64,000 nucleotides of DNA from Thalia democratica (lineage: Eukaryota). Below, piece by piece: positions 4,533 through 62,747 of this stretch. Both the position numbers and the translations under genes were made by a program. The notes below the pieces were generated by a model that ran no database searches, was not told the origin of the DNA, and saw nothing but the letters and a program-made list of their open reading frames with translations. How positions within the stretch are numbered: the first letter of the stretch is position 1; each line of letters starts with the position of its first letter. Where the stretch lies: NCBI GenBank assembly GCA_965202585.1, contig OZ241828.1, forward strand, positions 79,050,001-79,114,000, given 5' to 3'.

Positions 4533-4781
4533 ACACTGATCGATGAAAGATCGGCCCAGCAGGGATTGTCGGAATCACGACTGCCCTCGTTCACCTCCGA
4601 AGAGAAGGACATGATAAGGGGATCTTCGGACTTCTTCGGTCTCAACCACTACACCACCAACCTCGCCTACAACACTTTCAAACCCGCCAGCGGTGACGTG
4701 GTTGGTTACTATGACGACAGGGAGTGCGGCAACCAGAACGATTACACGTGGCCCACAGCCAAATCCGTTTGGTTGTTCGAG
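4533..4781 (+). CDS. GH1 beta-glucosidase / lactase-phlorizin-hydrolase-like gene, first exon visible in the window (upstream exons not found here)
   Basis: Acceptor ttttttccaag|ACA and donor GAG|gtaact. Translates TLIDERSAQQGLSESRLPSFTSEEKDMIRGSSDFFGLNHYTT...WLFE; SRLPxFT and DFFGLNHYTT are typical GH1/LPH motifs. GC-rich against an AT-rich background. Confidence 0.92.
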
Positions 4782-5149
4782 GTAACTGTTTTTTTTTATG
4801 GAATTCACAGTAAATGATTTATATATGTTATAATTAATTAACTTATCTTATCTTTAAAAAAAGTACTGCATAGGTATGATTTATAAAAAATTAAACAACC
4901 TTGATAGTTTGATTATTTAATGTTTTTTATATCTGTTCAAACAAACAGCACATATACGCTTCTAAATTTTAAGGAAGTATGTACACTCACATCAATTTTT
5001 AAAACTTTTAGTTAACCTTATGTACATATTTATTTAATCCGATTTTAAAAAAATCAAAAGAGAAAAATATAATTTTGTTTAAAGTTATACCAGAGAACCA
5101 AAACAATCAGATACTATTTAAGAACACGTCTTAAACAATATTCAAAAAG

Positions 5150-5315
5150 GTCCCGTGGGGAGTGAGACGGCTGCTGAACTACATCAAAGAAAAATACAAC
5201 GACCCGGAAATTATAATCACCGAGAACGGAGTTTCTGAAGGGGGAGATTCCCATGAACTGGACGATTATTGGAGGAAGGAGTATTACGTCGGTTACCTCA
5301 ACGAAGTTCTTAAAG
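5150..5315 (+). CDS. GH1 gene exon containing the catalytic nucleophile motif ITENG
   Basis: caaaaag|GTC CCG TGG GGA...AAA G|gttttg; VPWGVRRLLNYIKEKYNDPEIIITENGVS...YLNEVLK; phase 0 in, phase 1 out, consistent with neighbours. Confidence 0.93.
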
Positions 5316-5630
5316 GTTTTGAAATAATTTCTTATTTAGGTATTGTATTAAAATATGTGTTGAAGGCTTTATGACATTTTTTTTCATTTGTTTTAAGTAT
5401 TTACCTTGTATTTAACTTGACAATTATTTATAACTATTTTGTTTATATTGTTCTAACTTAACGAATTGATGAATTTCTTTACTTTGTTTATACAAAATAT
5501 GCTATATTTTACTCTAGTTTGATTTATTTAAAGTTTAAACTCTGACTAGAATCATAATAGGTTTTAAAGAACTCTACAAAAATAAACAATACTAACTACT
5601 TAAACTTTGTTTACGACTAAGAACACATAG

Positions 5631-7476: not shown

Positions 7477-8949
7477 CTTGTTATAAATTTTAGCCTTTCT
7501 ATTGTGATACATACAAAGACTTTTATATACAATATTTTAAATTAACATTGCATTTTACTAAGGAAGGGTGGCGTCGTTTCAGATGTGGTAAAAAATAGAT
7601 CCTTGCGGGCCAAATCATTTTAACCTTATTCTATTTATATAACATTTATAATAATTTCATAACTATTTAGTCGAAAATTGCTCAAAGTTCTTATTTCTTT
7701 AACAAATGAGAAAAAGAATTGAACTTTTTAATAATTTATCAAGTGTAATTTTTAGCTTCATTGAAACTGTACCGAGATCTTTCTTTTATCTATCCACATT
7801 AAGCCTAGAATGTCTAGTGTAAGTATTAGAGTTAACATAGCCAGGTTTACACGTTCTCTGGCTGCAGATTTACTTATTGCGGGCTGTGTTATCTGCAACT
7901 TTGTTAACATTTGCGGGCCTGTCATATATATTATGCAGTACTAGTTTAAAGCTTTAAACGAACACGTTTGAAAAATGATAACTTATATAACATTTTTTAC
8001 GTAAAAGTTGAAAGACTTTAGTTTTTGTTCAGTTTATCGTTTAAATACTACATTTAGGGTTATTTAAATTAAATAAATAAAATACTGAGCTTAGTAAACT
8101 TTCACTAATATGACTAGTTTGAACATTAGAGTTATGTTTTTCAAACATATTTTCAAAGGTATTAAAAATTTACTTTTTACATTCTAAAATTAAGTATTGC
8201 TACAAAATCTAGAGATGCAATATTTAAACTTATCATTTAATATGAGATTACTTAGTAAATAACAAAAAGGTGATTAATTCTTTACTTCTTAAAAATTAGA
8301 AAGTAAAACAAAATAAATAGGATAAAATCTTAAATAGTCTTACTTTGTATATAAGATTCACTCAAGCTTTTTACATCTTTATTTTCATAACATTGTTGTC
8401 TATTTCTTTTCAGCATATTGATAAACTTGTTGATATTAGCATGATATGTACTTGCTTTAAAAAAAAAAAACTAATTCAGAAAATTTCTATCTATTTATTT
8501 TATATGTGTTTCTTTCAAAGACTCATAACTAAAATATTTGTATTTATTTTGTTGTTTTTTCACTGGCTTACTTGTCTAAAATCATAATTGTTTGAATAAT
8601 AAAACCAGTGGTCGCCTTCTTTAGATATCATATCCATCAATAAATAAACAAGTTTCAGCACTCTTTGATAGAAATCAGATTTTAATATCATCAAAAAAAA
8701 GTATAGTTATTTAAAACGTTTACATTCAGTATTAAAATAATATTTTTAATCTAAGTGCGTACTTAACGCAAATGCGTACCTCTTAGTGTCCTTATCGATG
8801 TGCGTAGTGTAGTTGGTAAACAAATAAAGAGTATAAGATAGAAGTTAAGTAATGGTTTAAACAAGTAAATGTTATGAAAGAAGGTAGAAACATTTTTGAC
8901 TCTCTTGAGGTAGCCTTATACAAGTTTTTAAACACCAACATTTGAGCAT

Positions 8950-9585
8950 CATACGCGTATGCATAGTATTACACTATTAAGAGAGTGCTTTCACTCTGAA
9001 AAACGACAAGCTGACGACCTAGTCAGCTTAGGGATTTTATAATGCAAAGGTTATTGAAGAAAAGCCTAGACGTCGAGGCGGGTAGACGTCGTCAAGGCGG
9101 GTTAACTGGCAGTGTTTTTGCAGGCATATAGGTTATAGCTTGATTCGACGTGGCCGTCGACTCAAGCTGGCATCGAAAGAGCGCAGCTAAGCGTTAAAGG
9201 TCGTATAGCAGACCTCATTTAGTAAGTAGCGAGGGAAGGTGAAGCGAGAGCAAGGCAGGTACCGTCCTAAGCAAGCCATTGAGCATAAAAGCCGGTCTCT
9301 CGGAAGGCAGTTTATAAACGAGCTCTGACATGATTCAGCCCAGAAAAAAGTCTGTTTGAGTGCAGTATGATTGATTAAAGCATTTCTAGAGGTGAAGGTT
9401 CGGCCGGGGCGACTGAAGCAGAGTAGGCGAGATACTAGAAAATGCTAAGGCGAATCACTCAAAATGTAACAAGTAAAAAATCGGCTTAATCTCAATTAAG
9501 CTTTGAAAGTCAGAGGTCAGTAGAAGCGAAATGTTTTGCAAGGGAAGCAGGAGCTCCGAGAAAGCAATTGTAATAGAGGGGGGAG
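8950..9585 (+). other. GC-rich, purine-skewed, hairpin-rich non-coding block ending in polypurine tract AGAGGGGGGAG (copy 1)
   Basis: Stem-loops at 8982-8997, 9008-9029, 9137-9168 and 9379-9389/9435-9446; direct repeat tagacgtcg..aggcgggt x2; no ORF conserved across copies; PPT at 9575-9585 immediately followed by TGT. Confidence 0.7.
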
Positions 9586-9646
9586 TGTTTTTTAGAAAAA
9601 GTTGTTGAAAATGAAATGTTGGGTTGTAGGAAGGGTCAGTAGAATG

Positions 9647-9752
9647 TAGAAAGAAAAGTTGAAAAAAATTTGAGCAAAAAAGGCCTCCGAATTCGCCCGC
9701 GGGCGAATTCGGAGGCCTTTTTTGCTCAAATTTTTTTCAACTTTTCTTTCTA
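9647..9752. repeat. 106-bp perfect palindrome with no spacer (copy 1)
   Basis: TAGAAAGAAAAGTTGAAAAAAATTTGAGCAAAAAAGGCCTCCGAATTCGCCCG|CGGGCGAATTCGGAGGCC...TTTCTA; centre 9699/9700; checked base by base. Confidence 0.98.
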
Positions 9753-9762
9753 TGTTTTTTTC

Positions 9763-10000
9763 AAAGGCGTTCGACGAAAGTCGGATGCCTTTTTTTTACC
9801 CAAAGTTTTTTTCAATATTTTTTCAAAGGCGTTCGACGAAAGTCGGATGCCTTTTTTTTACCCAAAATTTTTTTCAATATTTTTCAAAGTCGTTCGACGA
9901 AAGTCGGATGCCTTTTTTTTTTACCCAAAATTTTTTGTTATATTTTTTCATAGGCGTTCGACGAAAGTCGGATGCCTTTTTTTTATCCAAAATTTTTTTT
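9763..10000 (+). repeat. Tandem array of 4 x ~62-bp units, each a 30-nt GAAA-tetraloop hairpin plus oligo-T
   Basis: AAAGGCGTTCGAC-GAAA-GTCGGATGCCTTT starting at 9763, 9825, 9886, 9950; spacers are near-identical T-rich sequence. Confidence 0.96.
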
Positions 10001-10160
10001 AAAGTATACCACAGTAATGACTTTTTTTCGATTATAATGATGTCTTAAGTTTTGAACGGTGCTGCCGAATAGTTAGCATCGTCTTTCTTACAAATTTTTA
10101 ATAAGGTTTGTTGGGGTTTCTAAATTTAATCTATCAATAGCCTTAACAGAAAAATATATT

Positions 10161-10680
10161 TAACTCTTGATACTTATAATAAGTTAAGATATATTCAAAA
10201 CAATGATAGTAGAAAGGGTTATTGTTTTTTGAAACATGTAATATAAAAATATTACAGACTTCAAAACCTTCTGTTATCATTTTCGGTTTTGAACTATAAA
10301 GATAATACTTTTCAACTAATTTTAATATGTTTAGGTATTTCTCTTTTCTATATAAACTATTTTTGAAGTTAAAAAATAAAAATATAATATTTATTGTAAA
10401 AATAAACCTTTAGTTAATTTAATTTCTATTTAATATTTTTATTTTTTTATATTATAACAAGTTAAGATATATTCAAAACTATGATAGTAGAAAGGTATAT
10501 TGTTTTTGAAACATGTAATATAAAAATATTACAGACTTCTAAACCTTCTGTTATCATTTTCGGTTTTGAATTATAAAGATAATACTTTTCACTAATTTTA
10601 ATATGTTAAGGTATTTCTTTTTTCTATATAAACTATTTTTGAAGTTAAAGAATAAAATTATAATATTTATTGTAAAAAAG
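10161..10680. repeat. 278-bp AT-rich tandem repeat, ~2 copies
   Basis: aagttaagatatattcaaaac recurs at 10,181 and 10,459. Confidence 0.92.
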
Positions 10681-12444
10681 ACCCAGAGCTAATTTTATTT
10701 CACAAATATGTGAGATTTTGTTACCAAGTACTGAAATTATTTATAACGGATAATTATAATAGAAAATCTAGAAGCTTAGGCAAGAAATATAGTTTCAAAA
10801 AATAAAACGAAACTAAATACCAAGTAAAAAATAAAATAAATATGAACCAGATACAATGCAGTTTTATTAGTAACATAGACAAAACGTTTCTTTTACATAA
10901 AATAAGTTATTTTCTGATTAGTTTCAAGTTTTAATATTGTTGAAAATAGCGATCAGTCATTTTACGCAATTTAATTATGTTATAGGCAGTATAAATATTT
11001 ACATTTTTCTACTATAAAACACTTCAACTAATTGTTTGCTTTTGCAACATTAGTATGTTGTTGTTTAGAAAATTATTACTGTGTTACTTTAGAAAGTTTA
11101 AAGAAAAGTTAGTTAGAAAGTTTTACTTGTTATACGTTACTTTTCTAGATTAACATTTTACTTTTTAGAATTAATTAAGTTCTACAAAAGTGTAAAACAT
11201 ATAAAACTTTTTATACATACTTTATTTCCTTTTTTCTAACTATTACAAACGGATAGTAATGTAGAACAACGTATTTGTTTTATTTTTAGAATTTTTTAAT
11301 TTCGATTAAACTTCATTCAGGACAAAAATGAGATTTTTGAATAATTTATAAACTAAATTTTACCCAATATTTACAACCTAATCGATACTACAACTAAATT
11401 AGCTTAGTACTGAAAAACATTTTATAACATAACTTTTAAAAACTAACAACTATTGACGTGAATAAACCTTTCAACTACAACTTATATAATTTGCAGTATA
11501 ACTTATATAAATACATGTTTTTATAATTAGTTGCATTAATAAACTCTTTTTATTAATATACGACATGAATGACTTAATTTCTAAACTAAGGCTCGAAACA
11601 ACTAACCTTGTAATGAATTAAAAGTAATTCTATCATAATTATAAGTAATTACATTAATAGTTTACTTTTATTACTATAAAATATCCATTTTTTAACTAAT
11701 TAGTCAACTTGTAGTGTAATTTAAGTAATTTTATTTTAAAGCGTAGTAATAATACTATCAAAAAGTCGAAACTTAAATCAGCGAATACATGTAGAATCAA
11801 GAATAATTAAATGCATTAAAACAATCAATTGCATTTAAAATTGGGATTTTATATTAATGAATAAACTTTAGATAACTACTCAAAATATAAATTTAAGTGT
11901 ATGTCAACAACAGATCCTGGTAAAACAACTTCATTGGAATATAAAATAAATAAAAATCTTACAGTAATCTAACTTTATTGTACCAAAATATGTTTCTGTG
12001 TGTTAACGGATTAACACACTTCAACTGGATTATGTAAAAATTAAATACTGTAATGAAAGAAATGAAAGAATAGAAGCTAAAGTAGGTCTAGATTAAATTA
12101 GACTTAATAATTACAATTAATATAAAGTTTTATAACAGTCGGATTTAACATTAAGTATTTTAGCTATTATTAACTATTAACCTCTAAAAATCTATAGAAA
12201 TTACTTTTATTTTAATGAATACATGTATACACCTACTTTAGCTTCTACTCGTAACTTTATTTAGATTACTGTATAATTTGTAGGCTTTAAATAAACATCG
12301 TAATACTTTTTTTTAAATATATTCTGTGAGAAGCATGAACTTTATTATTACAGTTTTAGATAAAAAATAGAACTATAGTTACACACAATCAATCTGTCAT
12401 ACTAGTTGTAATTTAATTTAGTAATTAATTAATTGTTTTTTAAT

Positions 12445-27619: not shown

Positions 27620-29083
27620 TTAGTTTTTTTGTTGTGAATTGACTTTTTTACACCAACTAGAAAGTTTTCTTTTAAACGAAGGTACCTTTACACAACAATA
27701 GTTTCTATAATCATATGTTTCGTCAATATCTTCGTATTTCCACAGACAATCTTCGTCAAGATCGTAGCAAAATACAGAATCTTCGTGCGGAAACAGATAA
27801 ATTTTCCTTTTAAAGCACAACACTTTGTTAATAGGAAAATCATCGTCGTTGGTGAAGAAAACAAATTCTTTAAAAGTGGTGTCGTACACCTCGCACGGTA
27901 TCGTGCAATCTCCAACTACAAACATTTTGTTGGTGGCAACAATCAGGCTGTGATCACTCCTTGCGTGTATCATGTCGGGCATTGCCGACCATTCATCGCC
28001 GAAAACGTCGTACGCCTCAACGCTTTTCAGCATGCGACCCGAAACACCACCCGAAACACCACCCGAAACCACCACCTTTCCCCGAAAAACCACGCAGGCG
28101 GAACGGCGTCTCGCGCTTTCCATTGCGCGCACTTCTTTGAACCCGTCGTCGTTGAAATAGCAGCAGGAGTTGGTGGCGTTTCCAAGCCAGCTGCCTCCTC
28201 CGACCACGAAGATTCTATCAATAAAGGAGCAAGCGCACGTTCCGATCCGGCCGTCGATCATGTCGAAGTTCAGCTCGCTCCACGTCCCGGTCGCGCGCGA
28301 GTACTTGTGAATTGACGTCGTGCGCCCGGAGCTGTCCTCACCGCCGATCAAGTAAACGTCGCCTTTCAAATACACGGCGATTGAACCGCACCGTCCCGCA
28401 ATCATCGAAGGCAGCCTTTTTGTTTTGTGCAAGTTGTGACGGCATTCGATTCGGTACGCGCACCTGAGAACTTCGTGACCGTTGCGTTTGTAACCTCCGC
28501 ACATTATGACGTCAAACTGGTCGTGGTCGCAACACCTTCTCGCGCGGTAACAGCTTGATTTTGTTAGAAGTACTTTTCTTCCGTTTACCTCTTTCAACGT
28601 TTCAACGAGCTCTTTAGTCACACCTAACGGTGACAGGCTGTTTACAAAATGCTGCATTTCGTATTGAGACAGTAGAGTCAGACGAACCTTGTGTAACAAT
28701 TGTTCTGCGAACTTGCTGCGTTCTTCATTGTTGTGTTTCAACCAAACTATTAACGAATTGGATACTTCAATTTCTGAGTGAATATTCAAGTTAGAACTTC
28801 CGAGTATTTTAACTAGCATATGGAAGTCTAGATTTAAAAAGTTTTCTGTTTCAACTACACTAGGGAAACAACTATCAATAAGGCGCAATGCGAGCTTTGC
28901 AAGGTACTGCAAGTCGTAAAATTTTGCTAAAGTGAAAACCAAAGTGACATTTTGAACATCAATATGTTTAATATGATCGTTTATTTCGTCCAAAATATCT
29001 TCTTCTAGCAATAACTTTTTAACTCTATATTATGAAACAATTTTTCTTTGTTTGATACTGGATTCATCTACAAAATATACCAT
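27620..29083 (-). CDS. BACK + Kelch-repeat protein (KLHL-like), copy 1; in-frame TAA at 29,032-29,030 suggests pseudogene or a downstream start
   Basis: BACK-like FLNLDFHMLVKILGSSNLNIHSEIEVSNSLIVWLKHN..ER...LLHKVRL; Kelch GG/Y/W motifs (VYLIGGED, IFVVGGG, VVVSGG, SVEAYDVFGDEWSAMPDM); 463 codons open from 29,011. Confidence 0.88.
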
Positions 29084-30052
29084 ATATAAAAGTTTTAAAA
29101 GACTAGTTTGAACATCTGAGTTATGTTTTTTAAACATATTTTAAAAGCTATTAAAACTTTACTTTTTTGAAGTCTACAAACATTCTAAATTTAAGTATTG
29201 CTACAAAATCTAGAGATGCAATATTTAAACTTATCGTTAAAAATGATATTACTTAGTAAATAACAAAAAGATGATTAATTCTTTACTTCTAAAAAACTAG
29301 AAACTAAAACAAAATAAATAGGATAAAATCTTAAATACTCTTACTTTGTTTGTAAGATTCACTCAAACTTTTTGCATCTTTATTTTCAGAAAATTGTTGT
29401 CTATTTCTTTTGAACATGTTGATAAACTTGTTGATAATAGCATGATATGTACTAGCTTAAAAAAAATAAAAGGTTAATTCAGAAAATATCTATCTGTTTA
29501 TTTTATATGTGTTTCTTTTAAAGACTCAAAACTTAAATATTTGTATTTATTTTGTTGTTTTTTCACTGGCTTAGTTGTCTGAAATCAAAATTATTTAAAT
29601 ACTAAAACCAGGGGTCGCCTTCTTTAGATATCATATCCTTCAATAAATAAATAAGTTTCAGCACTCTTTAATAGAAATGAGATATATATATATCATCAAT
29701 ATAAATACATTTTATTACTTGTATACTACAAATTATTAGAAACATACAAAAACTTGTAATATGTTAAACTGTAAGTTAGTGTGTAGAAAAGTTAAGACAA
29801 AGAGTATAGTTATACAAAACGTTTACATTCAGTATTTAAATAATATTTTTAATCTAAGTGCGTGCTTAACGCAAGTGCGTACCTCTTAGTGTCCTTATCG
29901 ATGTGCGTAGTGTAGTTGGTAAACAAATAAAGAGTATAAGATAGAAGTTAAGTAAAGGTATAAAAAAGTAAATGTTATGAAAGAAGATTGAAACATTTTT
30001 GACTCTCTTGAGGTAGCTTAATACAAGTTTTTAAACACCAACATTTGAGCAT

Positions 30053-30689
30053 CATACGCGTATGCATAATATTACACTATTAAGAGAGTGCTTTCACTCT
30101 GAAAAACGACAAGCTGACGACCTAGTCAGCTTAGGGATTTTATAATGCAAAGGTTATTGAAGAAAAGCCTAGACGTCGAGGCGGGTAGACGTCGTCAAGG
30201 CGGGTTAACTGGCAGTGTTTTTGCAGGCATATAGATTATAGCTTGAGTCGACGTGGCCGTCGACTCAAGCTGGCATCGAAAGAGCGCAGCTGAGCGTTAA
30301 AGGTCGTATAGCAGACCTCATTTAGTAGGTAGCGAGGGAAGGTGAAGCGAGAGCAAGGCAGGTACCGTCCTAAGCAAGCCATTGAGCATAAAAGCCGGTC
30401 TCTCGGAAGGCAGTTTATAAACGAGCTCTGACATGATTCAGCCCAGTAAAAAGTCGGTTTGAGTGCCAATATGATTGATTAAAGCATTTCTAGAGGTGAA
30501 GGTTCGGCCGGGGCGACTGAAGCAGAGTAGGCGAGGTACTAGAAAATGCTAAGGCGAAGCACTCAAAATGTAACAAGTAAAAAATCGGCAAAATCTCAAT
30601 TAAGCTTTGAAAGTCAGAGGTCAGTAGAAGCGAAATGTTTTGCGAGGGAAGCAGGAGCTCCGAGAAAGCAATTGTAATAGAGGGGGGAG
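30053..30689 (+). other. GC-rich hairpin block plus polypurine tract (copy 2)
   Basis: Homologous to 8,950-9,585; 14-bp stem agcttgagtcgacg/cgtcgactcaagct is perfect here. Confidence 0.7.
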
Positions 30690-30749
30690 TGTTTTTTCGA
30701 AAAAAATGTTGAAAATGAAATTTTGGGTAGTAGGAAGGGTCGGTAGAAT

Positions 30750-30857
30750 ATAGAAAGAAAAGTTGAAAAAAATTTGAGCAAAAAAGGCCTCCGAATTCGC
30801 CCGCGGGCGAATTCGGAGGCCTTTTTTGCTCAAATTTTTTTCAACTTTTCTTTCTAT
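30750..30857. repeat. Perfect palindrome (copy 2, 108 bp)
   Basis: Centre 30803/30804; the 106-bp core is identical to copy 1. Confidence 0.98.
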
Positions 30858-30866
30858 GTTTTTTTC

Positions 30867-31040
30867 AAAGGCGTTCGACGAAAGTCGGACGCCTTTTTTT
30901 TACCCAAAATTTTTTTCAATATTTTTTCAAAGGCGTTCGACGAAAGTCGGATGCCTTTTTTTTTACCCAAACTTTTTTTCAATACTTTTCAAAGGCGTTC
31001 GACGAAAGTCGGATGCCTTTTTTTTTACCCAAAATGTTTT
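30867..31040 (+). repeat. Tandem array of 3 x 62-bp hairpin units
   Basis: Hairpins start at 30867, 30929, 30991; the first has GGACGCC (G.U pair replaced by G-C). Confidence 0.96.
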
Positions 31041-31203
31041 TGAAGTATAACTCAGTAATGACTTTTTTTCGATTATAATGATGTGTTAAGTTTTGAACGG
31101 TGCTGCCGAAAGGTTAGCATCGTCTTTTTTTTTCAAATTTTTAATAAGGTTTGTTAGGGTTTCTAATTTTAAGCTATCAATAGCCTTAACAGAAAAATAT
31201 ATT

Positions 31204-33733: not shown

Positions 33734-36620
33734 CAACTGCTTTACACAGGCACTATTCATTAACAAGTGGCTGGTCCGGCTAGCGAGCTGTTATTTACCA
33801 ACCCCTAAATTTGAAATTTAGATATAAGATTATGCAGAGGTACTTTATTAAAAATCTACTAAAAAGGTTAAACAGAATAGCTTTCTCAAAGTGTGTATAT
33901 TCGTGACATATAGTTGATAGTACAATTAATTACGGAATTAAGCTTCACGCAACAGCTAATGGTCACCTTATTTACCTTACACGTCTGAAAGCAATGCGAA
34001 ATATTAAGATTATCACGTGACATTCTTTACTGACAATGCTGCACTCTGCTGAAGACCTGTATACACTACTGAGTCAGTTATAATCGGCAGCCTCAGATTT
34101 CGACCTTAGAACAAGTCTTGAAAAAACTAAAGTCTTAATAAAAAGAACATGTGTTCTACCTTCAATCAAGATCAATGGCAAGGATATCAAAAATGTAAAA
34201 ACGTCTGTATACCTTGGTAACGCATCATTTCTTATATTTACACCAGTCGAAGATCAGCGCCTGAATTAGACAATCAGGCAAGAACTTAAGCCATTTGAAA
34301 GTGACCTATACTTAATAATCAGAAACCTCAAGTTTTCAAATTTCAGATCAAAGTACCAAAAGACCTTAAACAAAAATATAAAAAACTTACTGAGTAAGAA
34401 AATTAATATAGTACTTTTAGATAAAATTATACTATATAAACACAAATAAATACAAGCAGCTACTAAAAAATAGCATAACGAGCGAATATCTAACTGAGAA
34501 AGAAAATAGTATTAATGCTATTAATAACGAGGCAGCCCAGATTCTAAATAAACAAAAAGTTTAAAGAACAAAATAATACCAAAGTATGAAATCAACGAAG
34601 CATTCCTTTCTGTCAAATACCACAAACCGAATTTTCCACATGATATTAGCTTTAATACAATTAATTCATTGAAAACTTACTTAGGTATAATATCCAGAAC
34701 CATTCTACAAAAATACATCGCAATCATAAGAAACAAATCCAACCTTAGGCAATGGAAAAACTTTGACGAAGTGATTTGTTGATTCGAAAAAATCAACAAC
34801 AGAAATCGGAAGAGCTTCGCTTCGACATAAAAAATTTAAACCGAACCATTAGAAAAAAAATTTACTGGATGCAATCCATTTCTCTAATTCTTATTCAAAA
34901 CTAACAGCATTTGAATTAAATTAACTTATGCACACATGTAAATCAATTATGTTCTAAGATAAAACTATGTGGAAAAAAACCAACAGCAATGAAAACTTCA
35001 ACGTCCCAATAAGCTCATTCCACGGCGCTGAAGTGTGTGACCTCGTAGGTTTATATCTCTTGAACCCTTTTGCCATCAATATAGTCGATACCAAGTCAGT
35101 TGGTCTCTATAAAGGTGATGGACTTGCCGTCATTAAACAAAAAAGTAAACGTAATTTTTGCAAAATAAAAACCAAATCACAAGAAAGCTATCAGACATTG
35201 AATTCAATATTACAACCAGCGCAAGTGAAACCTCTACTAACTTCTTGGACATTCAATTAACCTTTCTAACCGATGACTACTGCCCTTACATCAAACCAAA
35301 TGCAAAAACTATTTATATTAACAAAGACTCAAACCACCCTTGAAAGATTAAGGAAAATAATCTAAAAATGATTGAAAAATAATTTCAAAACTAACGAAAA
35401 GCCAGGCCTCATTTGATAACGCAAAACACATTTATCAAAACGCTTTAAATAAAAGCAATTTCAATTATAAGCTCGAACACAATCCAACAATTGATAGAAC
35501 AAAACTAATAATCAGAAAAGGAAAGTGCATATTTTACAACCCACCTTTTTCGAATCAGTGAAAACAAAATTCGGAAGTCTATTCGTAAAACTGTTGGACA
35601 AACACTTCCCGAAATCAACTGAACTCTACAAAATATTTGATAGAAATTCAATCAAGATCTTATGTAGTTGTTGGCCAAACTTAAAAGCAATCATAAGTGT
35701 GCACAACAAAAAGCTACTCAAAAAACTACCAACAGAGTCAGAACTATGTAACTGCAAAAACAAAAACCAACTTCCAGTCATGAACAAATTTAAATCCATA
35801 ATTTAATCTACAAAGCAATTGCCTCATCTGAGAAAAATGAAAATATGTCATTTATTTGAACCACTCGAACACCTTTTAACAACAGATTATACGAACGTCG
35901 AACATAGAGCATCATTTCCTAAACCCAACAAGAAGAAGCCCACCAACTGCACAATTATACTAAAAAGACGAAAAATACACAATTAACTGGAAATGACTTA
36001 GACAAATCAACAGTATATTCAAACCAAACTTCATGCGCTCATTATGTAACCTGAAAGACTACACATAGCAAGTGCTAAATAATAGAAATGAACTGGTTAC
36101 ACAGTGCCCTCATTACCCAAGGGAATATTTTTAGTTGATTCTTAATCGCATTAATTAAGTGCATTTTATTCTATTTAATTAGTTGTTTCGTTATATTTAT
36201 GTTTCTATTGTGTATATATTTTCGGTTTTAGATACAACCTTGTCGTAAAAAGACTATTTTTTTTTTTTAAATACCCTATAAATCCTAATATTTTCAAATT
36301 TAAAAGCTTACTTTATTAAAAATACTGTTTAAATCTTGTACAAAACGAATTTTATCTTTCTTCAATATAATGGACTTAAATAATGTTTAATTAACATAAG
36401 ACAACAATTCTATATTTCGTTTTTATTTAATTTTTGTTAACAGCATGTTAATGGTAAGTCATATTTTAAACTTAAATTTATTTTTACGGGTGTATTATTT
36501 ATAGTTGTGTTATATTAATTCATCGCTTTGCATTTATTGTTTTTCAGCTTTTGTTTGCGCCTGATGAATTGCTGTGCTGAGAAACGGCGTAACGCAATAA
36601 GTTAAACAATAAATTAGTAT
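33734..36620 (+). mobile_element. Decayed Penelope-like retroelement (Neptune-like RT + Cys linker + GIY-YIG), copy 1
   Basis: ORF pieces: SFHGAEVCDLVGLYLL (family motif GSFDGAEVCELVGLYIL), GLYKGDGL (family GLYRDDGL, catalytic motif altered), NFLDIQL, YINKDSNHP, FGSLFVKLLDKHFPK, CNCKNKNQ.P...K; many stops and frameshifts; boundaries approximate. Confidence 0.9.
36555..36597 (+). ncRNA. Hammerhead motif, degenerate copy
   Basis: ttgcgc CTGATGA attgctgtgctga GAAA cggc GTA acgcaa; stems I and II carry mismatches. Confidence 0.55.
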
Positions 36621-38077
36621 ATTATTATATCAAATTTAAAAAAAAGTTTTAGTAATAAGTAATAAGTTTTCAAATAGTTCTATGCTTTATGTACATCTAA
36701 AAGCGTGCTGTTAAACTGTTTTTTAGTTATAACACAGCATAGAAATAACAATTTATATATTTTTTCAAGTACTTATTTTCGTCGAATTTTTTTTTATATA
36801 TTTCTTTATTTTAACTTGCACCAAACAGTACGTTAAAGTTCAAATGTTAGTAAAAATATTCTATGTGCTCTTTTAACTAGTAAGAAGTTAAATTGTTCAG
36901 TTTAAACTATACAAACAGCATACGATTATAAAATATATACTTTCTAGGATATCCTTAATATTAACGCCTTTAGAATTTTTTAATTTCGATTAAACTTAAT
37001 TCAGGACAAAAATGAGATTTTTGAATAATTTATAAACTATATTTTACCCAATATTTATAACCTAATCGATACTACAACTAAATTAGCTTAGTACTGAAAA
37101 ACTTTTTATAACATAACTTTTAAAAACTAACAACTATTGACGTGAATAAACCTTTCATCTACAACTTATATAATTTGCAGTATAACTTATATAAATACAT
37201 GTTTTTATAATTAGTTGCATTAATAAACTCTTTTTATTATTATACGACATGAATGATTTAATTTCTAAACTAAGGCTCGAAATAACTAAACTTGTAATGA
37301 ATTAAAAGTAATTCTATGATAATTATAAGTAGTTACATTAATAGTTTACTTTTATTACTACACAATATCCATTTTTTAATTAATTAGTCAACTTGCAGTG
37401 TATTTTAAGTAATTTTATTTTAAAGCGTAGTAATAATACTATCAAAAAGTCAAAACTTAAATCAACGAAAACATGTAGAATCAAGAATAATTAAATGCAT
37501 AAAAGCAATCAATTGCATTTAAAACTGGACTTTAATAATTATGAATAAACTTTAGATAACTACTCAAAATATAAATTTAAGTGTATGTCAACAACGGATC
37601 CTAGTAAAACAACTTCATTGAAATATAAAATAAAAAAAAATCTAACTTTATTGTACCAAAATATGTTTCCGTGTGTTAATAGACTAACAAACGTTCTGTA
37701 AAAATTAAATACTGTAATGAAAGAATAGAAGCTAAAGTAAGTCTAGATTAAACATGACTTAATAATTACAATTATTATAAAGTTTTATATCAGTCGGATT
37801 TAACATTAATTATTTTACCTATTATTAACTATTAACATCTAAAAATTTGTAGAAATTATTTTTATTTTAATGAATACATGTATACACCTACTTTAGCTTC
37901 TACTCGTTCTTTTATTCAGATTACTGTATAATTTGTTAGCCTTAAATAAACATCGTAATACTTTTTTTTAAATATATTCTGTGAGAAGCATGAACTTTAT
38001 TATTACAGTTTTAGATAAAAAATAGAACTATAGTTACACACAATCAATCTGTCATACTAGTTGTAATTTTTACTTTT

Positions 38078-40975
38078 AACTGCTTTACACAAGCACTATT
38101 CATTAACAAGTGGCTGGTCCGGCTAGCGAGCTGTTATTTACCAACCCCTAAATTTGAAGTTTAGACTTAAGATTATGCAGAGGTACTTTATTAAAAATCT
38201 ACTAAAAAAGTTTTAACAGAATAGCTTTCTCAAAGTGTGTATATTTTAAAAGTACTTCGTGACATATAGTTGATAGTACAATTAATTACGGAATTAAGCT
38301 TCACACAAGAGCTAATGGTCACCTTATTTACCTTACACGTCTGAAAGCAAAGTGAAATATTAAGATTATCACGTGACATTTTTTTTACTGACAATGCTGC
38401 ACTCTGCTGAAGACCTGTATAAACTATTGAGTCAGTTATAATCGGCAGTCTCAGATTTCGACCTTAGATCAAGTCTTGAAAAAATAAAGTCTTAATAAAA
38501 AGAACATGTGTTCTACCTTCAATCATGATCAATTTCAAGGATAACAAAATTGTAAAAACGTCTGTATACCTTGGTAACGCATCATGTCTTATATTTACAC
38601 CAGTCGGAGATCAGCGCCTGAATTAGACAAACTTAAACCATTTGAAAGTGACCTATACTTAACAATCAGAAACCTCAAATTTTCAAATTTCAGATTAAAG
38701 TACCAAAAGACCTTAAACAAAAACATAAAAAACTTACTGAGTAAGAAAATCAATATAGTACTTTCAGATAAAACATTAAATTAATACTATATAAACACAC
38801 ATAAATACAAGCAGCTACTAAAGAATAGCGTAACGGCGGAATATAAAACTGACAATGAAAATATCATTAATGCTATTAATAACGAGGCAGCCCAGATTCT
38901 AAATAAACAAAAAGTTTAAAGAACAAAAGAACAACAAAGTATGAAATCAACGAAGCATTACTTTCTGTCAAATACCACAAACCGAACTTTCCACATGACA
39001 TTAGCTTTAGAACAATTAATTCATTGAAAACTTACTTAGGTATAATATCCAGAACCATTCTACAAAAATACATCGCAATCATAAGAAACAAATCCAACCT
39101 TAGGCAATGTAAAAACTTTGACGAAGTAATTTGTTGATTCGAAAAAATCAACAACAAAAATCGCAAGAGCTTCGCTTCGACATAAAAAAAGTTATACCCA
39201 ACCATTGAAAAAAAATATTTACTAGATGCCATCAACTTCTCTAACTCTTATTTAAAACTAACAGAATTTGAATTAAATTAACTTATGCACACATGTAGAT
39301 CAATTATGTTCTAAGATAAAACTATGTGGAAAAAAACCAACAGCAATGACAACTTCAACGTCCGAATGGGCTCATTCCACGGCGCTGAAGTGTGTGACCT
39401 CGTAGGTTTATACCTCTTGAACCCTTTTGCCAACGATAATCGATACCGAGTCAGTTGGGCTCTATAAAGGTGATGGACTTGCCGTCATTAAACAAAAAAA
39501 TAAATGTAATATTTGCAAAATAAATAACCAAATCACAAGAAAGCTATCAGACATTGCATTCAATATTACAACCAACGCAGGTGAAACCTCTACTAACTTC
39601 TCGGACATTCAATCAAACTTTCTAACCGATGACTACTGCACGTACATCAAACCAAACGCAAAAACTATTTATATTAACAAAGACTCAAACCACCCTTGAA
39701 AGATTAAGGAAAATAATCTAAAAATGATTGAAAAATAATTTCAAAACTAACAAAAAACCAGGCCTCATTTGATAACGCAAAACACATTTATCAAAACGCT
39801 TTAAATAAAAGCAACTTCAATTATAAGCTCGAACACAATCCAACAATTGATCAAACAAAACTAATAATCAGAAAAGGAAAGTGCATATTTTACAACCCAC
39901 CTTTTTCGAATCAGTGAAAACAAAATTCGGAAGTCTATTCGTAAAACTGTTGGACAAACACTTCCCGAAATCAACTGAACTCTACAAAAACTTTGATAGA
40001 ACTTCTATCAAGATCTTATGTAGTTGTTGGCCAAACTTAAAAGCAATCATAAGTGTGCACAACAAAAAGCTACTCAAAAAACTACCAACAGAGTCAGAAC
40101 TATGTAACTGCAAAAACAAAAACCAACTTCCAGTCATGAACAAATTTAAATCCATAATTTAATCTACAAAGCAATTGCCTCATCTGAGAAAAATGAAAAT
40201 ATGTCATTTATTTGAACCACTCGAACACCTTTTAACAACAGATTATACGAACGTCGAACATAGAGCATCATTTCCTAAACCCAACAAGAAGAAGCCCACT
40301 AACTGCACAATTATACTAAAAAGACGAAAAATACACAATTAACTGGAAATGACTTAGACAAATCAACAGTATATTCAAACCAAACTTCATGCGCTCATTA
40401 TGTAACCTGAAAGACTACACATAGCAAGTGCTAAATAATAGAAATGAACTGGTTACACAGTGCCCTCATTACCCAAGGGAATATTTTTAGTTGATTCTTA
40501 ATCGCATTAATTAAGTGCATTTTATTCTATTTAATTAGTTGTTTCGTTAAACTTATGTTTCTATTGTGTATATATTTTTGTTTTTAGATACAACCTTGTC
40601 GTAAAAAGACTATTTTTTTTTTTAAATACCCTATAAATCCTAATATTTTCAAATTTAAAAGCTTACTTTATTAAAAATACTGTTTAAATCTTGTACAAAA
40701 CGAATTTTATCTTTCTTCAATATAATGGACTTAAATAATGTTTAATTAACATAAGACAACAATTCTATATTTCGTTTTTATTTAATTTTTGTTAACAGCA
40801 TGTTAATGGTAAGTCATATTTTAAACTTAAATTTATTTTTACGGGTGTATTATTTATAGTTGTGTTATATTAATTCATCGCTTTGCATTTATTGTTTTTC
40901 AGCTTTTGTTTGCGCCTGATGAATTGCTGTGCTGAGAAACGGCGTAACGCAATAAGTTAAACAATAAATTAGTAT
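38078..40975 (+). mobile_element. Decayed Penelope-like retroelement, copy 2
   Basis: ORFs 38584-38784, 39427-39699 and 39881-40162 are paralogous to copy 1. Confidence 0.9.
40910..40952 (+). ncRNA. Hammerhead motif, degenerate copy
   Basis: Identical to 36,555-36,597. Confidence 0.55.
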
Positions 40976-42431
40976 ATTATTATATCAAATTTAAAAAAAA
41001 GTTTTAGTAATAAGTAATAAGTTTTCAAATAGTTCTATGCTTTATGTACATCTAAAAGCGTGCTGTTAAACTGTTTTTTAGTTATAACACAGCATAGAAA
41101 TAACAATTTATATATTTTTTCAAGTACTTATTTTCGTCGAATTTTTTTTTATATATTTCTTTATTTTAACTTGCACCAAACAGTACGTTAAAGTTCAAAT
41201 GTTAGTAAAAATATTCTATGTGCTCTTTTAACTAGTAAGAAGTTAAATTGTTCAGTTTAAACTATACAAACAGCATACGATTATAAAATATATACTTTCT
41301 AGGATATCCTTAATATTAACGCCTTTAGAATTTTTTAATTTCGATTAAACTTAATTCAGGACAAAAATGAGATTTTTGAATAATTTATAAACTATATTTT
41401 ACCCAATATTTATAACCTAATCGATACTACAACTAAATTAGCTTAGTACTGAAAAACTTTTTATAACATAACTTTTAAAAACTAACAACTATTGACGTGA
41501 ATAAACCTTTCATCTACAACTTATATAATTTGCAGTATAACTTATATAAATACATGTTTTTATAATTAGTTGCATTAATAAACTCTTTTTATTATTATAC
41601 GACATGAATGATTTAATTTCTAAACTAAGGCTCGAAATAACTAAACTTGTAATGAATTAAAAGTAATTCTATGATAATTATAAGTAGTTACATTAATAGT
41701 TTACTTTTATTACTACACAATATCCATTTTTTAATTAATTAGTCAACTTGCAGTGTATTTTAAGTAATTTTATTTTAAAGCGTAGTAATAATACTATCAA
41801 AAAGTCAAAACTTAAATCAACGAAAACATGTAGAATCAAGAATAATTAAATGCATAAAAGCAATCAATTGCATTTAAAACTGGACTTTAATAATTATGAA
41901 TAAACTTTAGATAACTACTCAAAATATAAATTTAAGTGTATGTCAACAACGGATCCTAGTAAAACAACTTCATTGAAATATAAAATAAAAAAAAATCTAA
42001 CTTTATTGTACCAAAATATGTTTCCGTGTGTTAATAGACTAACAAACGTTCTGTAAAAATTAAATACTGTAATGAAAGAATAGAAGCTAAAGTAAGTCTA
42101 GATTAAACATGACTTAATAATTACAATTATTATAAAGTTTTATATCAGTCGGATTTAACATTAATTATTTTACCTATTATTAACTATTAACATCTAAAAA
42201 TTTGTAGAAATTATTTTTATTTTAATGAATACATGTATACACCTACTTTAGCTTCTACTCGTTCTTTTATTCAGATTACTGTATAATTTGTTAGCCTTAA
42301 ATAAACATCGTAATACTTTTTTTAAATATATTCTGTGAGAAGCATGAACTTTATTATTACAGTTTTAGATAAAAAATAGAACTATAGTTACACACAATCA
42401 ATCTGTCATACTAGTTGTAATTTTTACTTTT

Positions 42432-45335
42432 AACTGCTTTACACAAGCACTATTCATTAACAAGTGGCTGGTCCGGCTAGCGAGCTGTTATTTACCAACC
42501 CCTAAATTTGAAGTTTAGACTTAAGATTATGCAGAGGTACTTTATTAAAAATCTACTAAAAAATTTTAAACAGAATAGCTTTCTAAAAGTGTGTATATTT
42601 TAAAAGTTTTTCGTGACATATAGTTGATAGTACAATTAATTACGGAATTAAGCTTCACGCAACAGCTAATGGTCACCTTATTTACCTTACACGTCTGAAA
42701 GCAAAGTGAAATATTAAGATTATCACGTGACATTCTTTTTACTGACAATGCTGCACTCGTTGCTCACTCTGCTGAAGACCTGTATACACTATTGAGTCAG
42801 TTATAATCGGCAGCCTCAGATTTCGACCTTAGATCAAGTCTTAAAAAAACTAAAGTTTTAATCCAAAGAACATGTGTTCTACCTTCAATCAAGATCAATT
42901 TCAAGGATATCAAAGTTGTAAAAACGTCTGTATACCTTGGTAACGCATCATTTATTTATTTACACCATTCGAAGATCAGCGCCTGAATTAGACAATCTTA
43001 AGGCATTTGAAAGTGACCTATACGTAATAATGAGAAACCTCAAGTTTTCAAATTTCAGACCAAAGTACCAAATAACCTTAAAGAAAAACATAAAAAACTT
43101 ACTGAGTAAGAAAATAAGTATAGTACTTTCAGATAAAACATCAAATTTATACTATATAAACACAAATAAATACAAGCAGCTTCTAAAGAATAGCATAACG
43201 AGCGAAGATAAAACTGACAATGAAAATATCATTAATGCTATCAATAACGAGGCAGCCCAGATTCTAAACTAAATAAACAAAAAGTTTAAAGAACTAAATA
43301 ATACCAAAGTATGAAATCAACGAAGCATTACTTTCTGTCAAATACCACAAACCGAACTTTCCACATGATATTAGCTTTAGAACAATTAATTCATTGAAAA
43401 CTTACTTAGGTATAATATCCAGAACAATTCTACAAAAATACATCGCAATCATAAAAAAACAAATCCTACCTTAAGCAATGGAAAAACTTTGACGAAGTGA
43501 TTGGTTGATTCGAAAAAATCAACAACAAAAATCGCAAGAGCTTCGCTTCGACATAAAAAATCTATACCGAAACATTAAAAAAAAATTTACTGGATGCAAT
43601 CAATTTCTTTATTTCTTATTTAAAACTAACAGAATTTGAAATAAATTCGCTTATGCACACATGTAAATCAATTATGTTCTAAGATAAAACTATGTGGATA
43701 AAAACCAACAGCAATGACAACTTCAACGTCCGAATGGGTTCATTCCACGGCGCTGAAGTGTGTGACCTCGTAGGTTTATATCTCTTGAACCCTTTTGCCA
43801 ACAATATAATCGATACCGAGTCAATTGGTCTCTATAAAGGTTATGGACTTGCCGTCATTAAGCAAAAAAGTAAATGTAATGTTTGCAAAATAAATAACCA
43901 AATCGTAAGAAAGCTATCAGACATTGGATTCAATATTACAATCAACGCAGGTGAAACCTCTACTAACTTCTTGGACATTCAATTAACCTTTCTAACCGAT
44001 GACTTACATCAAACCAAATGCAAAAACTATTTATATTAACAAAGACTCAAACCACCCTTGGAATATTAAGAAAAATAATCTAAAAATTATTGAAAAATAA
44101 TTTCAAAACTAACAAAAAGCCAGACCTCATTTAATAACGCAAAACACATTTATCAAAACGCTTTAAATAAAAGCAACTTAAATTATAAGCTCGAACACAA
44201 TCCAACAATTGATAAAACAAAACTAAAAATCAGAAAAGGAAAGTGCATATTATACAAACCACCTTTTTATAATCGGTGAAAACAAAATTCGGAAGTCTAT
44301 TCGTAAAACTGCTAGACAAACACTTCCCGAAACAAACTGAACTCTACAAAATCTTTGATAGAAATTCCATCAAGATCTTATGTAGTTGTTGGCCAAACAT
44401 AAAAGCAATCATAAGTGTACACACCAAAAAGCTACTTTTAAAACCACCAACAGAGTCAGAACTACGTAACTGCAAAAACAAAAACCAACTTCCAGTCATG
44501 AACAAATGTAAATCCATAATCTAATCTACAAAGCAATTGCCTCATCTGAGAAAAATTAAAATATGTCATTTATTTGATCCACTCGAACACCTTTTATCAA
44601 CAGATTATACGAACGTCGAACATAGAGCATCATTTCTTAAACCAAACAAGAAGAAGCCCACCAACTGCACAATTATACAAAAAAGACGAAAAATACACAA
44701 TAAACTGGAAATGACTTGGACTAATCAACAGTTTATTCAAACCAAACTTCATGTGCTCATTATGTAACCTACAAAGACTATACATAGCAAGTGCTAAATA
44801 ATAGAAATGAACTGGTTACACAGTGCCCTCATTACCCAAGGGAATATTTTTAGTTGATTCTTAATCGCATTAACTAAGTGCATTTTATTCTATTTAAATA
44901 GTTGCTTCGTTATACTTATGTTTCTATTGTGTATATATTAATGTTTTGAGATACAACCTTTTCGTAAAAAGACTATTCTCGTTTTTTATAATCCCTTATA
45001 AATCCTAATATTTTCAATTTTAAAAGCTTATTATATTTAAAATACTGTTTAAATCTTGTACAAAGCGAATTTTATCTTTCTTTATTATAATGGACTTAAA
45101 TAATGTTTAATTAACAGAAGACAACAATTCTATATTTCGTTTTTCTTTAATTTTTGTTAACAGCATGTTAATGGTAAGTCATGTTTTAAACTTAAATTTA
45201 TTTTTACGGATGTATTATTTATAATTGTGTTATATTAGTTCATCGCTCTGCATTTTTTTTGTCAGCTTTTGTTTGCGCTTGATGAATTGCTCTGCTGAGA
45301 AACGGCGTAACGCAATAAGTTGAACAATAAATTAG
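42432..45335 (+). mobile_element. Decayed Penelope-like retroelement, copy 3
   Basis: ORFs 42937-43272, 43692-44039 (MGSFHGAEVCDLVGLYLL...YKGY) and 44276-44524. Confidence 0.9.
45273..45315 (+). ncRNA. Hammerhead motif with mutated core (TTGATGA)
   Basis: C3 to U change in CUGANGA; probably inactive. Confidence 0.45.
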
Positions 45336-61070: not shown

Positions 61071-61938
61071 ATATAAAAGTTTTAAAGACTAGTTTGAACA
61101 TTTGATTTTTGTTTTTTAAACATGTTTTAAAAGCTATTAAAACTTTACTTTTTTGAAATCTAAAAACATTCTAAATTTAAGTATTGCTACAAAATCTAGA
61201 GGTGCAATATTTAAACTTATCATTTAAAATGAGATTATTTAGCAAATACCAAAAAGATGATTAATTCTTTACTTCTAAAATAATTAGAAACTAAAACAAA
61301 ATAAATAGGATAAAATCTTAAATAGTCTTACTTTGTTTATAAGATTCACTCAAACTTTTTGCATCTTTATTTTCAGAACATTGTTGTCTATTTCTTTTTA
61401 ACATATTGATAAACTTGTTGATATTAGCATGATATGTACTTGCTTTAAAAAAAAAAAACTAATTCAGAAAATTTCTATCTATTTATTTTATATGTGTTTC
61501 TTTCAAAGACTCATAACTAAAATATTTGTATTTATTTTGTTGTTTTTTCACTGGCTTACTTGTCTAAAATCATAATTGTTTGAATAATAAAACCAGTGGT
61601 CGCCTTCTTTAGATATCATATCCATCAATAAATAAACAAGTTTCAGCACTCTTTGATAGAAATCAGATTTTAATATCATCAAAAAAAAGTATAGTTATTT
61701 AAAACGTTTACATTCAGTATTAAAATAATATTTTTAATCTAAGTGCGTACTTAACGCAAATGCGTACCTCTTAGTGTCCTTATCGATGTGCGTAGTGTAG
61801 TTGGTAAACAAATAAAGAGTATAAGATAGAAGTTAAGTAATGGTTTAAACAAGTAAATGTTATGAAAGAAGGTAGAAACATTTTTGACTCTCTTGAGGTA
61901 GCTTAATACAAGTTTTTAAACACCAACATTTGAGCATC

Positions 61939-62570: not shown

Positions 62571-62631
62571 TGTTTTTTAGAAAAAGTTGTTGAAAATGAA
62601 ATGTTGGGTTGTAGGAAGGGTCAGTAGAATG

Positions 62632-62737: not shown

Positions 62738-62747
62738 TGTTTTTTTC

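Follow-up and report, generated by a model that had tools for sequence, protein, structure and literature searches.

How can a perfect palindrome of more than 100 bp, with no spacer between its arms, persist in many copies in a nuclear genome while its sequence drifts? Instability, and decay through central deletion, would be expected of a long palindrome without a loop. The question is raised by a 64,000-nucleotide stretch of the genome of the salp Thalia democratica (C4:79,050,001-79,114,000, in the following "the window"; the genome amounts to 800 Mb in 1833 contigs), which has a G+C content of about 25% and contains three copies of a large repeat unit. Each of them carries a palindrome (copy 1, 9647-9752; copy 2, 30751-30856; copy 3, 62632-62737), formed in copies 1 and 3 by two perfect arms of 53 nt, with no spacer. 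An earlier note, made from the letters of the window, had reported an identical 106-bp core at 9647, 30751 and 62632; this is borne out, all three 106-mers being the same. In copy 2, the symmetry continues to 57+57 nt with one mismatch (30747-30860, 98% complementary). The nested sites reported within the arms, AGGCCT and CGAATTCG, and the CCGCGG centre were also found as described, the arms meeting at CCCG/CGGG. The palindrome is real: a perfect 53-nt arm is excluded as a chance product of 64 kb (4^-53 per site).

The 62 nt at the left of the palindrome differ at 7 positions between units 1 and 2, exactly as the earlier note had counted, while units 1 and 3 are identical there. For units 1 and 2, the count is 25 over the left 300 nt and 2 over the right 62 nt; at the left-flank rate, about 9 differences would be expected per 106 nt, and 0 are seen in the palindrome. 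The ability to fold was evaluated for both nucleic acids. As single-stranded DNA, the palindrome forms one hairpin of -61 kcal/mol, compared with -14.2 +/- 2.7 for shuffled sequences (z = -17.5). As RNA, the region is predicted to form a long hairpin together with hairpins closed by GAAA loops (z = -17).

Copies were then collected genome-wide. A BLAST search with the 106-mer gave 40 scored places among 147 candidates, while the 26-bp centre has 95 matches in the genome at up to 2 mismatches, and its reversed control 0. Out of the 95 centre matches, 55 intact copies were read, together with 1.5-kb flanks. They correspond to about 20 distinct variants of 102-116 bp, mostly perfect, with 52-58 nt per arm. 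The palindrome is unchanged in the three copies of the window; genome-wide, both length and sequence vary, each variant being itself palindromic.

Regularly spaced runs of copies are found on C4 (78.53-79.20 Mb, repeating every 17-51 kb or so), C6 (65.84-66.07 Mb, every 29-46 kb), C1 (93.22-93.42 Mb, every 34 kb or so), C7 (36.47-36.60 Mb, every 12.9-51 kb; 41.62-41.67 Mb, every 22.5 kb; and 9.45 Mb) and C2 (21.64-21.69 Mb), as well as on several unplaced contigs. Most located copies belong to tandem arrays, of 13-63 kb in period, where they appear one to a unit; the remaining unit sequence can be unrelated. In the C1 array, the end units are inverted relative to the inner ones. Copies appearing singly are located on C5 (two), at 41.9 Mb on C1 and at 81.9 Mb on C2; solitary or array status was judged from match lists which give lower bounds. 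A pattern joining flank to flank produced 47 matches at a gap of 110-140 nt and 0 at 0-118 nt; where precisely these flank motifs are kept, shortened derivatives are thus rare. The surroundings of all 55 read copies are non-coding and oriented alike, the left flank reading ...GGGTTGTAGGAAGGGTCGGTAGAATA and the right flank T7-CAAAGGCGTTCGACGAAAGTCGGATGCC-T8... in each. Since these oriented flanks accompany every read copy, the palindrome is not an autonomous mobile unit.

The context is a non-coding module of about 1.2-1.5 kb, composed of a conserved structured block, the palindrome and a hairpin array. The first motif common to all lineages marks its left edge (8751-8782, + strand; CTAAGTGCGTAC..GCAAGTGCGTACC, with a 9-mer repeated twice), about 900 nt from the palindrome. 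The block in common with the copies on other chromosomes starts at window positions 8691-8750 in most lineages, and elsewhere at about 8895 (two lineages), 9034 (one) or about 9395-9417 (two units); it ends at about 10,180-10,280 in the C7 and C2 copies and beyond 13.9 kb in C1. The left border was also considered as an LTR-type PPT/TG junction, for which there was no support, no LTR features being seen. Directly left of the palindrome lies a conserved, GC-richer non-coding block (8901-9646, + strand), which recurs at 30005-30750 and 61886-62631. At the other side, hairpin/T-run arrays made of 62-nt units are found on the + strand, with 3.9 copies in unit 1 (9756-9999), 2.9 in unit 2 (30860-31041) and 4.9 in unit 3 (62741-63046). 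The 62-nt unit consists of a GC hairpin of 10-13 bp with a GAAA loop and G.U pairs on the + strand, followed by T8, ACCCAAAA, T7 and CAATA.

Evolutionary rates were compared along this module. Nucleotide diversity, computed over 39 unique copies, is 0.30-0.41 at 8701-8850 and 0.08-0.19 at 8901-9650; it falls to 0.06 in the palindrome, is 0.07 in the first hairpin after it, and reaches 0.2-0.33 beyond that hairpin. Against the 0.06 of the palindrome, the flanks stand at 0.12-0.41. Counted by parsimony, the arms have taken 0.58 and 0.57 steps per site, the 100 nt adjacent on the left 1.38, the GC-richer block 1.0 and more distant sequence 2.8-3.2. Units 1 and 2 are identical at 89-91% of the flank positions, at 96.6% across the module (8696-9936) and at 100% within the palindrome. 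Nothing else in the module evolves as slowly as the palindrome. Gene conversion between copies, and not constraint, could be behind part of this low rate.

The changes which have occurred in the palindrome are almost always found in both arms. Over the inner 50 nt or so of each arm, 50 of the 55 copies show no asymmetry, 3 show one and 2 show two. Copies carry up to 6 arm edits with respect to the window copy, and for 51 of 55 the count in the left arm equals that in the right. Mirrored substitutions include GGCC to GCCC or GCCG, TCC to ACC and GAATTC to GATTTC. TAGAAAG is replaced by CAGAAAG, TGGAAGG, TAGATAG or TAGGAAG, with the mirrored change in the opposite arm, and several changes in the length of A/T runs have their reverse-complement counterpart in the other arm. 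Transversions and 1-bp indels are present among the lineage-specific mirrored changes, and a mirrored GATTG vs GTTTG difference occurs inside a single array.

These changes were placed, by parsimony, on a maximum-likelihood tree of the left flank alone (window 8760-9640), in which 37 tips remained once two rows, with rearranged flanks, had been dropped. Symmetric-to-symmetric column changes amount to 52, a figure inflated, like all column counts, by indel shifts, of which the qualitative pattern is independent; 28 of them map to internal branches, and all of these older changes (28/28) are mirrored. Changes from a symmetric to an asymmetric state (n=17) are all on terminal branches, about half of them due to one copy that slipped by 1 nt. 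Transversions predominate among the unpaired changes listed. Pair counting was limited to a gap-free core of 28 pairs in 20 distinct sequences, MAFFT gaps in the outer arms being unmirrored; the outer arms were analyzed through a joint alignment of both arms. Within the core, 22 pairs are invariant, 4 show two-sided swaps (GC/CG, UA/AU) and 0 show one-sided changes, with 99.5% of the cells paired, values unmatched by any shuffle or slid control. The centre, which cannot pair, also stays symmetric across variants.

The earlier note had asked for a count of substitutions in palindrome and flank over all genomic copies, and for a look at paired arm changes: paired changes prevail, and the palindrome is slower than the flank. 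The note had proposed arm-to-arm repair or selection as what keeps the palindrome perfect, and this finds strong support in the mirrored changes, in the confinement of asymmetries to terminal branches and in an evolution 2-5 times slower than that of the flanks. With spacer-less, reverse-complementary arms whose differences are mirrored and whose asymmetries are young, the family appears, from sequence comparison, to be a clear nuclear example of an actively maintained sequence with a predicted hairpin.

The relation between the palindrome and the adjacent array was analyzed by alignment. The right arm and its tail align to the 62-nt unit with a score of 50, while shuffled sequences score 13.4 +/- 4.4, with a maximum of 32. 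In the C1 lineage, the array units are 74 nt long and have the same CCAACTTTTCTTTCTGTA tail as the palindrome arm. The homology of the right arm to the unit and the common tail in C1 identify the palindrome as unit 0 of the hairpin array. The left arm is the reverse complement of the tail homologous to the neighbouring array unit, as in a template-switch product; loop, 3' stem and tail of the palindrome are thus present again, reverse-complemented, on the 5' side.

The other structured parts of the module change in a different way. The upstream block gives alifold z-scores of -6.4 and -4.6 on the + strand and of -3.5 and -2.6 on the - strand, and its stems show many one-sided changes of the G.U type. 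In the GAAA hairpin adjacent to the palindrome, 5 of 10 pairs vary on one side via G.U and 3 on both sides; between a C2 copy (L025) and the C4 hairpin, 3 double and 4 single pairing-preserving changes can be read from the sequence. The GAAA hairpin evolves in the manner of an RNA stem; the palindrome and the neighbouring hairpins, a few nucleotides apart, thus change under two distinct regimes. Terminator-like sites number 5 in a simple scan, compared with 1.1 expected. Runs of T5-T6 are also present upstream of the palindrome, so that a Pol III-type reading of the T-runs misfits a single long transcript.

The units which carry the module differ in their remaining content. On C4, an intronless BACK-Kelch ORF of 483 aa lies on the - strand of unit 3 (59619-61070), outside the module, with its start codon 1.56 kb left of palindrome copy 3; the corresponding ORF of unit 2 (27620-29011, - strand) is of 463 aa. 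This BACK-Kelch subfamily is found in the C4 array and in related unplaced contigs only. The nearest Kelch relative is located on a 2.6-kb metagenome contig, which is uninformative on transcript ends. The other gene of the C4 unit is of glycosyl hydrolase family 1 (GH1), with two of its exons at 4566-5374 (+ strand). GH1 exons form a cluster at 78.37-78.51 Mb on C4, with in-array copies up to 79.24 Mb, and are found elsewhere only in related unplaced contigs and at unrelated loci on C6 (38.15 Mb) and C7 (19.74 Mb). A Pfam search on 20 further ORFs retrieved GH1 exons only; transposases, reverse transcriptases and viral proteins were not among the matches. In a complete C7 unit, of 12.9 kb, the 9.8-kb interior is free of ORFs reaching 70 aa, and the module is all that this unit has in common with that of C4. 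Two units of the C4 array are devoid of the module, switching to unrelated DNA at window-equivalent position 8615.

Occurrences outside the assembly were looked for in public data. Words of the palindrome are present in contigs of four public runs, under three organism codes and a marine metagenome label; two runs, labelled as different organisms, contain them at high depth, and one of these two also contains a variant matching that of C2. Studies containing part of an 801-bp stretch around the palindrome are 13. The right arm and the hairpins are found in marine metatranscriptome contigs, which may reflect DNA carry-over. None of the k-mer contigs crosses the palindrome centre, as expected of de Bruijn graphs at a perfect palindrome. 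One contig from an RNA library departs from the window sequence exactly at the centre (9699). In two runs with contigs exactly or nearly exactly matching the window, word depth is 800-1500, which could correspond to expression or to a higher copy number.

Known families and collections were searched as well. Neither Rfam, at gathering threshold, nor a tRNA scan gave a match in the whole window. An Rfam scan by E-value produced sub-threshold long-hairpin look-alikes on the palindrome only, the best being MIR821 (71 bits, threshold 249); the GC block was left without any match. The palindrome centre has 0 matches in IMG/VR and in JGI metagenome contigs, and the hairpin motif has 0 matches in JGI metagenome contigs. 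The Helitron Rep domain (PF14214) has no match in the genome; control genomes gave likewise none, so that this result is uninformative.

A few copies are rearranged or decayed. At 78.646-78.655 Mb of C4, a tandem re-duplication involves about 2 kb (window-equivalent 9634-11613), from a point 13 nt to the left of the palindrome onwards; each junction contains a 19-nt filler, copied from the palindrome centre (-6 to +13). At 41.9 Mb of C1, a second sub-copy lies 279 nt downstream, made of sequence resembling the left flank and of the right arm, without left arm and centre. The module copy at 28.2 Mb of C4 breaks off some 17 nt into the left arm, behind an intact left flank, and unrelated DNA follows. 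A copy at 11.89 Mb of C6 (L062) carries at least 4 unpaired substitutions, the centre CCCGTGGG included. At least two copies which appear singly in the searches, outside the mapped arrays, are decayed or interrupted; symmetry is, thus, not automatic and self-maintaining.

The reading which we favour, with a probability of about 0.6, is that the palindrome is unit 0 of the hairpin array with an extended stem, that its arms evolve in concert by templated copying and selection, and that it probably has a role at a transcript end. Originally, a short hairpin would have been present; by fold-back or template switching, the 3' tail of the unit would have been copied, reverse-complemented, onto its 5' side, extending the stem to 52-58 bp. 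Since then, a change in one arm would be either lost or copied into the other, most likely by intrastrand templated synthesis or repair on the extruded hairpin, that is, by quasi-palindrome correction; asymmetric variants do not persist in array copies. Selection alone is unlikely, because it would require an exactly mirrored second hit more than 20 times, transversions and indels among them, and because intermediates of the G.U type are not seen. Templated correction alone leaves the four unpaired changes of L062 unexplained; because of these, and because the palindrome evolves more slowly than its flanks, whereas arm-to-arm copying by itself leaves the substitution rate unlowered, selection would act in addition. 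It may be exerted on a function of the predicted hairpin for the organism, or via the propagation of units with a perfect palindrome. The G.U pairing specific to the + strand, in the short hairpins and in the upstream block, suggests that the module is probably transcribed from left to right. The weakest step of this proposal is the last one, in which palindrome and hairpin/T-run array might form, by resemblance only, a structural or terminator-like transcript end or boundary.

The same observations may be read in other ways. The palindrome could be a selfish driver of amplification, stalling or breaking replication forks, and thereby seeding and expanding the large-unit arrays; perfect units would be duplicated or converted more often, with no benefit to the organism. 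We consider this possible, although unlikely. Amplification driven by inverted repeats, through template switching, is known (PMC10766183), and in the salp most located copies are in tandem arrays, on C1, C2, C4, C6, C7 and unplaced contigs, while the copies found decayed or interrupted are two of those appearing singly. The module is all that the ORF-poor C7 unit has in common with the genic C4 unit, and the inversion of the end units of the C1 array is also in line with such a process. Three single cases of derivative structures (the re-duplication with filler, the sub-copy lacking left arm and centre, and the copy cut in its left arm) have breakpoints in or next to the palindrome. Against this reading, the differences in unit length within the window stem from a 4.36-kb sub-repeat and other sub-repeats, and not from the palindrome, module-less units persist in the C4 array, and the left edge of the module is about 900 nt away from the palindrome; moreover, all arrays could derive from one old array, the unconstrained parts of which diverged past recognition. 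The idea, put forward in the earlier note, of a fragile site driving the surrounding amplification is partly supported, by the three local breakpoints and by the prevalence of arrays; the other sub-repeats, through which array periods differ, and the module-less units in the same array speak against it. Its support is local only, and a causal role of the palindrome in building the arrays is unproven. A broader formulation is equally tentative: the module would be an undescribed cis-acting element of salp genomes, either a selfish "array seeder", producing the 13-63-kb arrays by fork breakage or template switching, with unit-level selection preserving its perfection, or a new multicopy structured non-coding RNA gene of an animal nucleus, ending in a long perfect hairpin and a terminator-like hairpin array.

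A purely RNA-level element, in which the palindrome would be a long and perfect hairpin in RNA (for instance in a precursor of small RNAs, or at a transcript end) and undergo ordinary compensatory evolution under selection for RNA structure, appears improbable. It would agree with the behaviour of the neighbouring hairpins and of the upstream block, which resembles that of + strand RNA structures, with the RNA fold predicted for the region, with the metatranscriptome contigs and with the sub-threshold Rfam matches, solely to long-hairpin miRNA precursor models. What speaks against it is the mode of change of the palindrome: no one-sided states of the G.U type are seen in 28 core pairs of 20 sequences, whereas the adjacent hairpin is full of them, the unpaired changes are mostly transversions, 1-bp indels are mirrored and the symmetry includes an unpairable centre; in addition, no Rfam family reaches threshold. 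High copy number and perfect symmetry might also suggest an independent mobile palindrome, of the MITE or foldback type, or the relic of a replicated hairpin telomere or viral concatemer junction, a form which, as the earlier note pointed out, hairpin telomeres take upon replication. Both are very improbable. A MITE or foldback transposon was rejected, since unrelated contexts with target-site duplications are lacking and 55/55 read copies have the same oriented flanks; one arm is, furthermore, homologous to the adjacent repeat unit. The telomere or concatemer junction fails, as the symmetry ends after 52-58 nt in each arm, no inverted repetition links the two flanks past 58 nt, the units are direct repeats in one oriented context, no viral-type Pfam domain was found in the 20 ORFs tested and IMG/VR gave no match. 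The searches of JGI contigs and, weakly, in view of the equally negative control genomes, that for Helitron Rep point in the same direction, as do the 20 other ORFs, among which, the Kelch gene and the GH1 exons apart, no match to a Pfam family was obtained. Finally, chimeric fold-back reads can yield perfect palindromes, and the GC core is built of nested restriction-site palindromes and resembles vector polylinker words. With 95 copies and about 20 lineage-specific variants in diverged natural flanks, an assembly, polishing or cloning-linker artefact is excluded for practical purposes; the words are found at depth in separate public runs, parts of the 801-bp stretch in 13 studies, and decayed and rearranged derivatives exist. 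In view of the natural variants and of the occurrences in wild metagenomes, a polylinker origin was rejected.

The favoured reading, of a hairpin-array unit with an extended stem and arms evolving in concert, has precedents for its single steps. Template switching can create perfect stems and maintain their pairing (PMC8794818), and extends arm identity in yeast quasi-palindromes (PMC3820800). In quasi-palindrome correction, or Ripley-type template switching, one event copies an arm from the other, producing perfect stems, multi-base "compensatory" changes, mirrored indels and stem extension (PMC8794818, PMC3820800); these features fit both the pattern described here and the putative origin from a short hairpin. 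That process is known mainly from short stems, from microbes and from rRNA genes, whereas here it would act in a spacer-less, multicopy nuclear family of 102-116 bp in an animal. For the perfect inverted repeats of Nematomorpha mitochondrial DNA, concerted evolution of the arms was described, and the same mechanism proposed (PMC6649704). Like these, and like the inverted repeats of C. elegans (PMC1803023), the salp palindrome is long and free of mismatches, its perfection being preserved by paired substitutions. The Nematomorpha repeats, however, lie in mitochondrial coding genes, and those of C. elegans are kb-scale gene pairs with spacers; the salp palindrome is a loop-less, non-coding element with many nuclear copies, linked to a hairpin/T-run array. 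The human PATRRs (PMC1851657; reviewed in PMC7999016) are similarly spacer-less, with AT-rich outer arms, a high hairpin potential and breakpoints at or near the centre. They differ in being polymorphic, longer and not conserved as functional units, whereas the salp palindrome has a GC-rich core and is the most conserved part of its module.

The arrangement of a GC-rich stem between A6 and T6, followed by repeated GC hairpins, each with T8, resembles intrinsic terminators, including bidirectional ones, and the likeness is one of resemblance only. Termination at a hairpin followed by a U-run belongs to bacterial and phage RNA polymerases; to our knowledge, it is not established for the nuclear polymerases of animals. 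The 2023 Salpa genome paper makes no mention of palindromes, hairpins or tandem arrays.

The behaviour of the family is already known in kind, as that of maintained perfect inverted repeats and of quasi-palindrome correction. In the literature searched, its form is undescribed: a nuclear, non-coding, loop-less palindrome of 102-116 bp in about 95 copies, located once per large tandem unit as the stem-extended head of a hairpin/T-run array. A family of this size, which stays perfect despite sequence drift, provides more than 20 natural mirrored changes, including transversions and 1-bp indels, and thereby a clean natural data set on the persistence of perfect palindromes. With RNA-type hairpins placed beside a strict, DNA-style symmetry, the module is a natural test bed for the creation and maintenance of hairpins by template switching, and the near-constant association of module and arrays makes the formation of macro-repeats driven by a palindrome testable in an animal germ line.

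The 62-nt array of GAAA-loop hairpins that lies to the right of the palindrome (window 9756-9999, 30860-31041 and 62741-63046) shows a mode of evolution resembling that of RNA stems, and G.U pairs are found within its hairpins on the + strand only. In L025, the copy of the module located on contig C2, the counterpart of the array (L025:1615-1700) contains a hairpin whose stem has been recast through three double changes and four single ones, all of which preserve pairing; neither the GAAA loop nor the T8 run is altered.

To the left of the palindrome, the conserved GC-richer block (8901-9646, repeated at 30005-30750 and 61886-62631) was also evaluated for folding. The consensus folding signal of the 8901-9646 block is stronger on the + strand than on the other one, and includes a 14-bp hairpin, AGCTTGAGTCGAC...GTCGACTCAAGCT. 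No match to this block was found among Rfam families, and it may represent an undescribed structured RNA. A second inverted repeat able to form a hairpin, GGCTACCTCAAGAGAGTC ... GACTCTCTTGAGGTAGCC, is placed after the hairpin array in some lineages (positions 1660-1710 of the genomic stretch L024 and 1706-1752 of L025); in the C4 lineage a single half of it is found, 750 nt left of the palindrome (window 8898-8915).

Contigs assembled from k-mers of public sequencing runs, exactly or nearly matching the module, reach a word depth of 800-1500 in runs X1 and X6 (about 1 Gb each, library type unspecified), and of 24 in a third run; the high values mean that some samples either express the module strongly or carry far more copies of it. 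A metatranscriptome contig from run X15 matches window 9699-9785 exactly and continues into 109 nt of unrelated sequence, the switch falling exactly at the palindrome centre, 9699. This switch may be genuine, marking an alternative junction, or may have been produced by the assembly graph.

The whole module is missing from two units within the C4 array, L060 (C4:79223000-79226000) and L061 (C4:78827500-78830500), where homology to the window ends at the equivalent of 8615/61603 and is followed by 2.4 kb of unrelated DNA. The array on contig C1 (C1:93216614-93416751) is composed of seven units, the first and the last carrying the module inverted relative to the five inner ones. Unit 2 in the window owes much of its surplus length to a 4.36-kb sub-repeat that is present three times in tandem (34400-46000) and is strongly strand-asymmetric (AT skew reaching +0.24, GC skew near -0.2); the ORFs tested from these copies gave no Pfam match.

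BACK-Kelch genes that lack both introns and a BTB domain, found on the - strand at window 27620-29011 and 59619-61070, have undergone a massive genome-wide expansion (5371 first-look candidates), large clusters being exemplified by C1 114.5-115.8 Mb. Since glycosyl hydrolase family 1 (GH1) genes are clustered beside the C4 array (C4:78.37-78.51 Mb), and recurring GH1 exons are held by the units themselves (window 4566-5374), the C4 array is an amplified pair of GH1 and Kelch genes.
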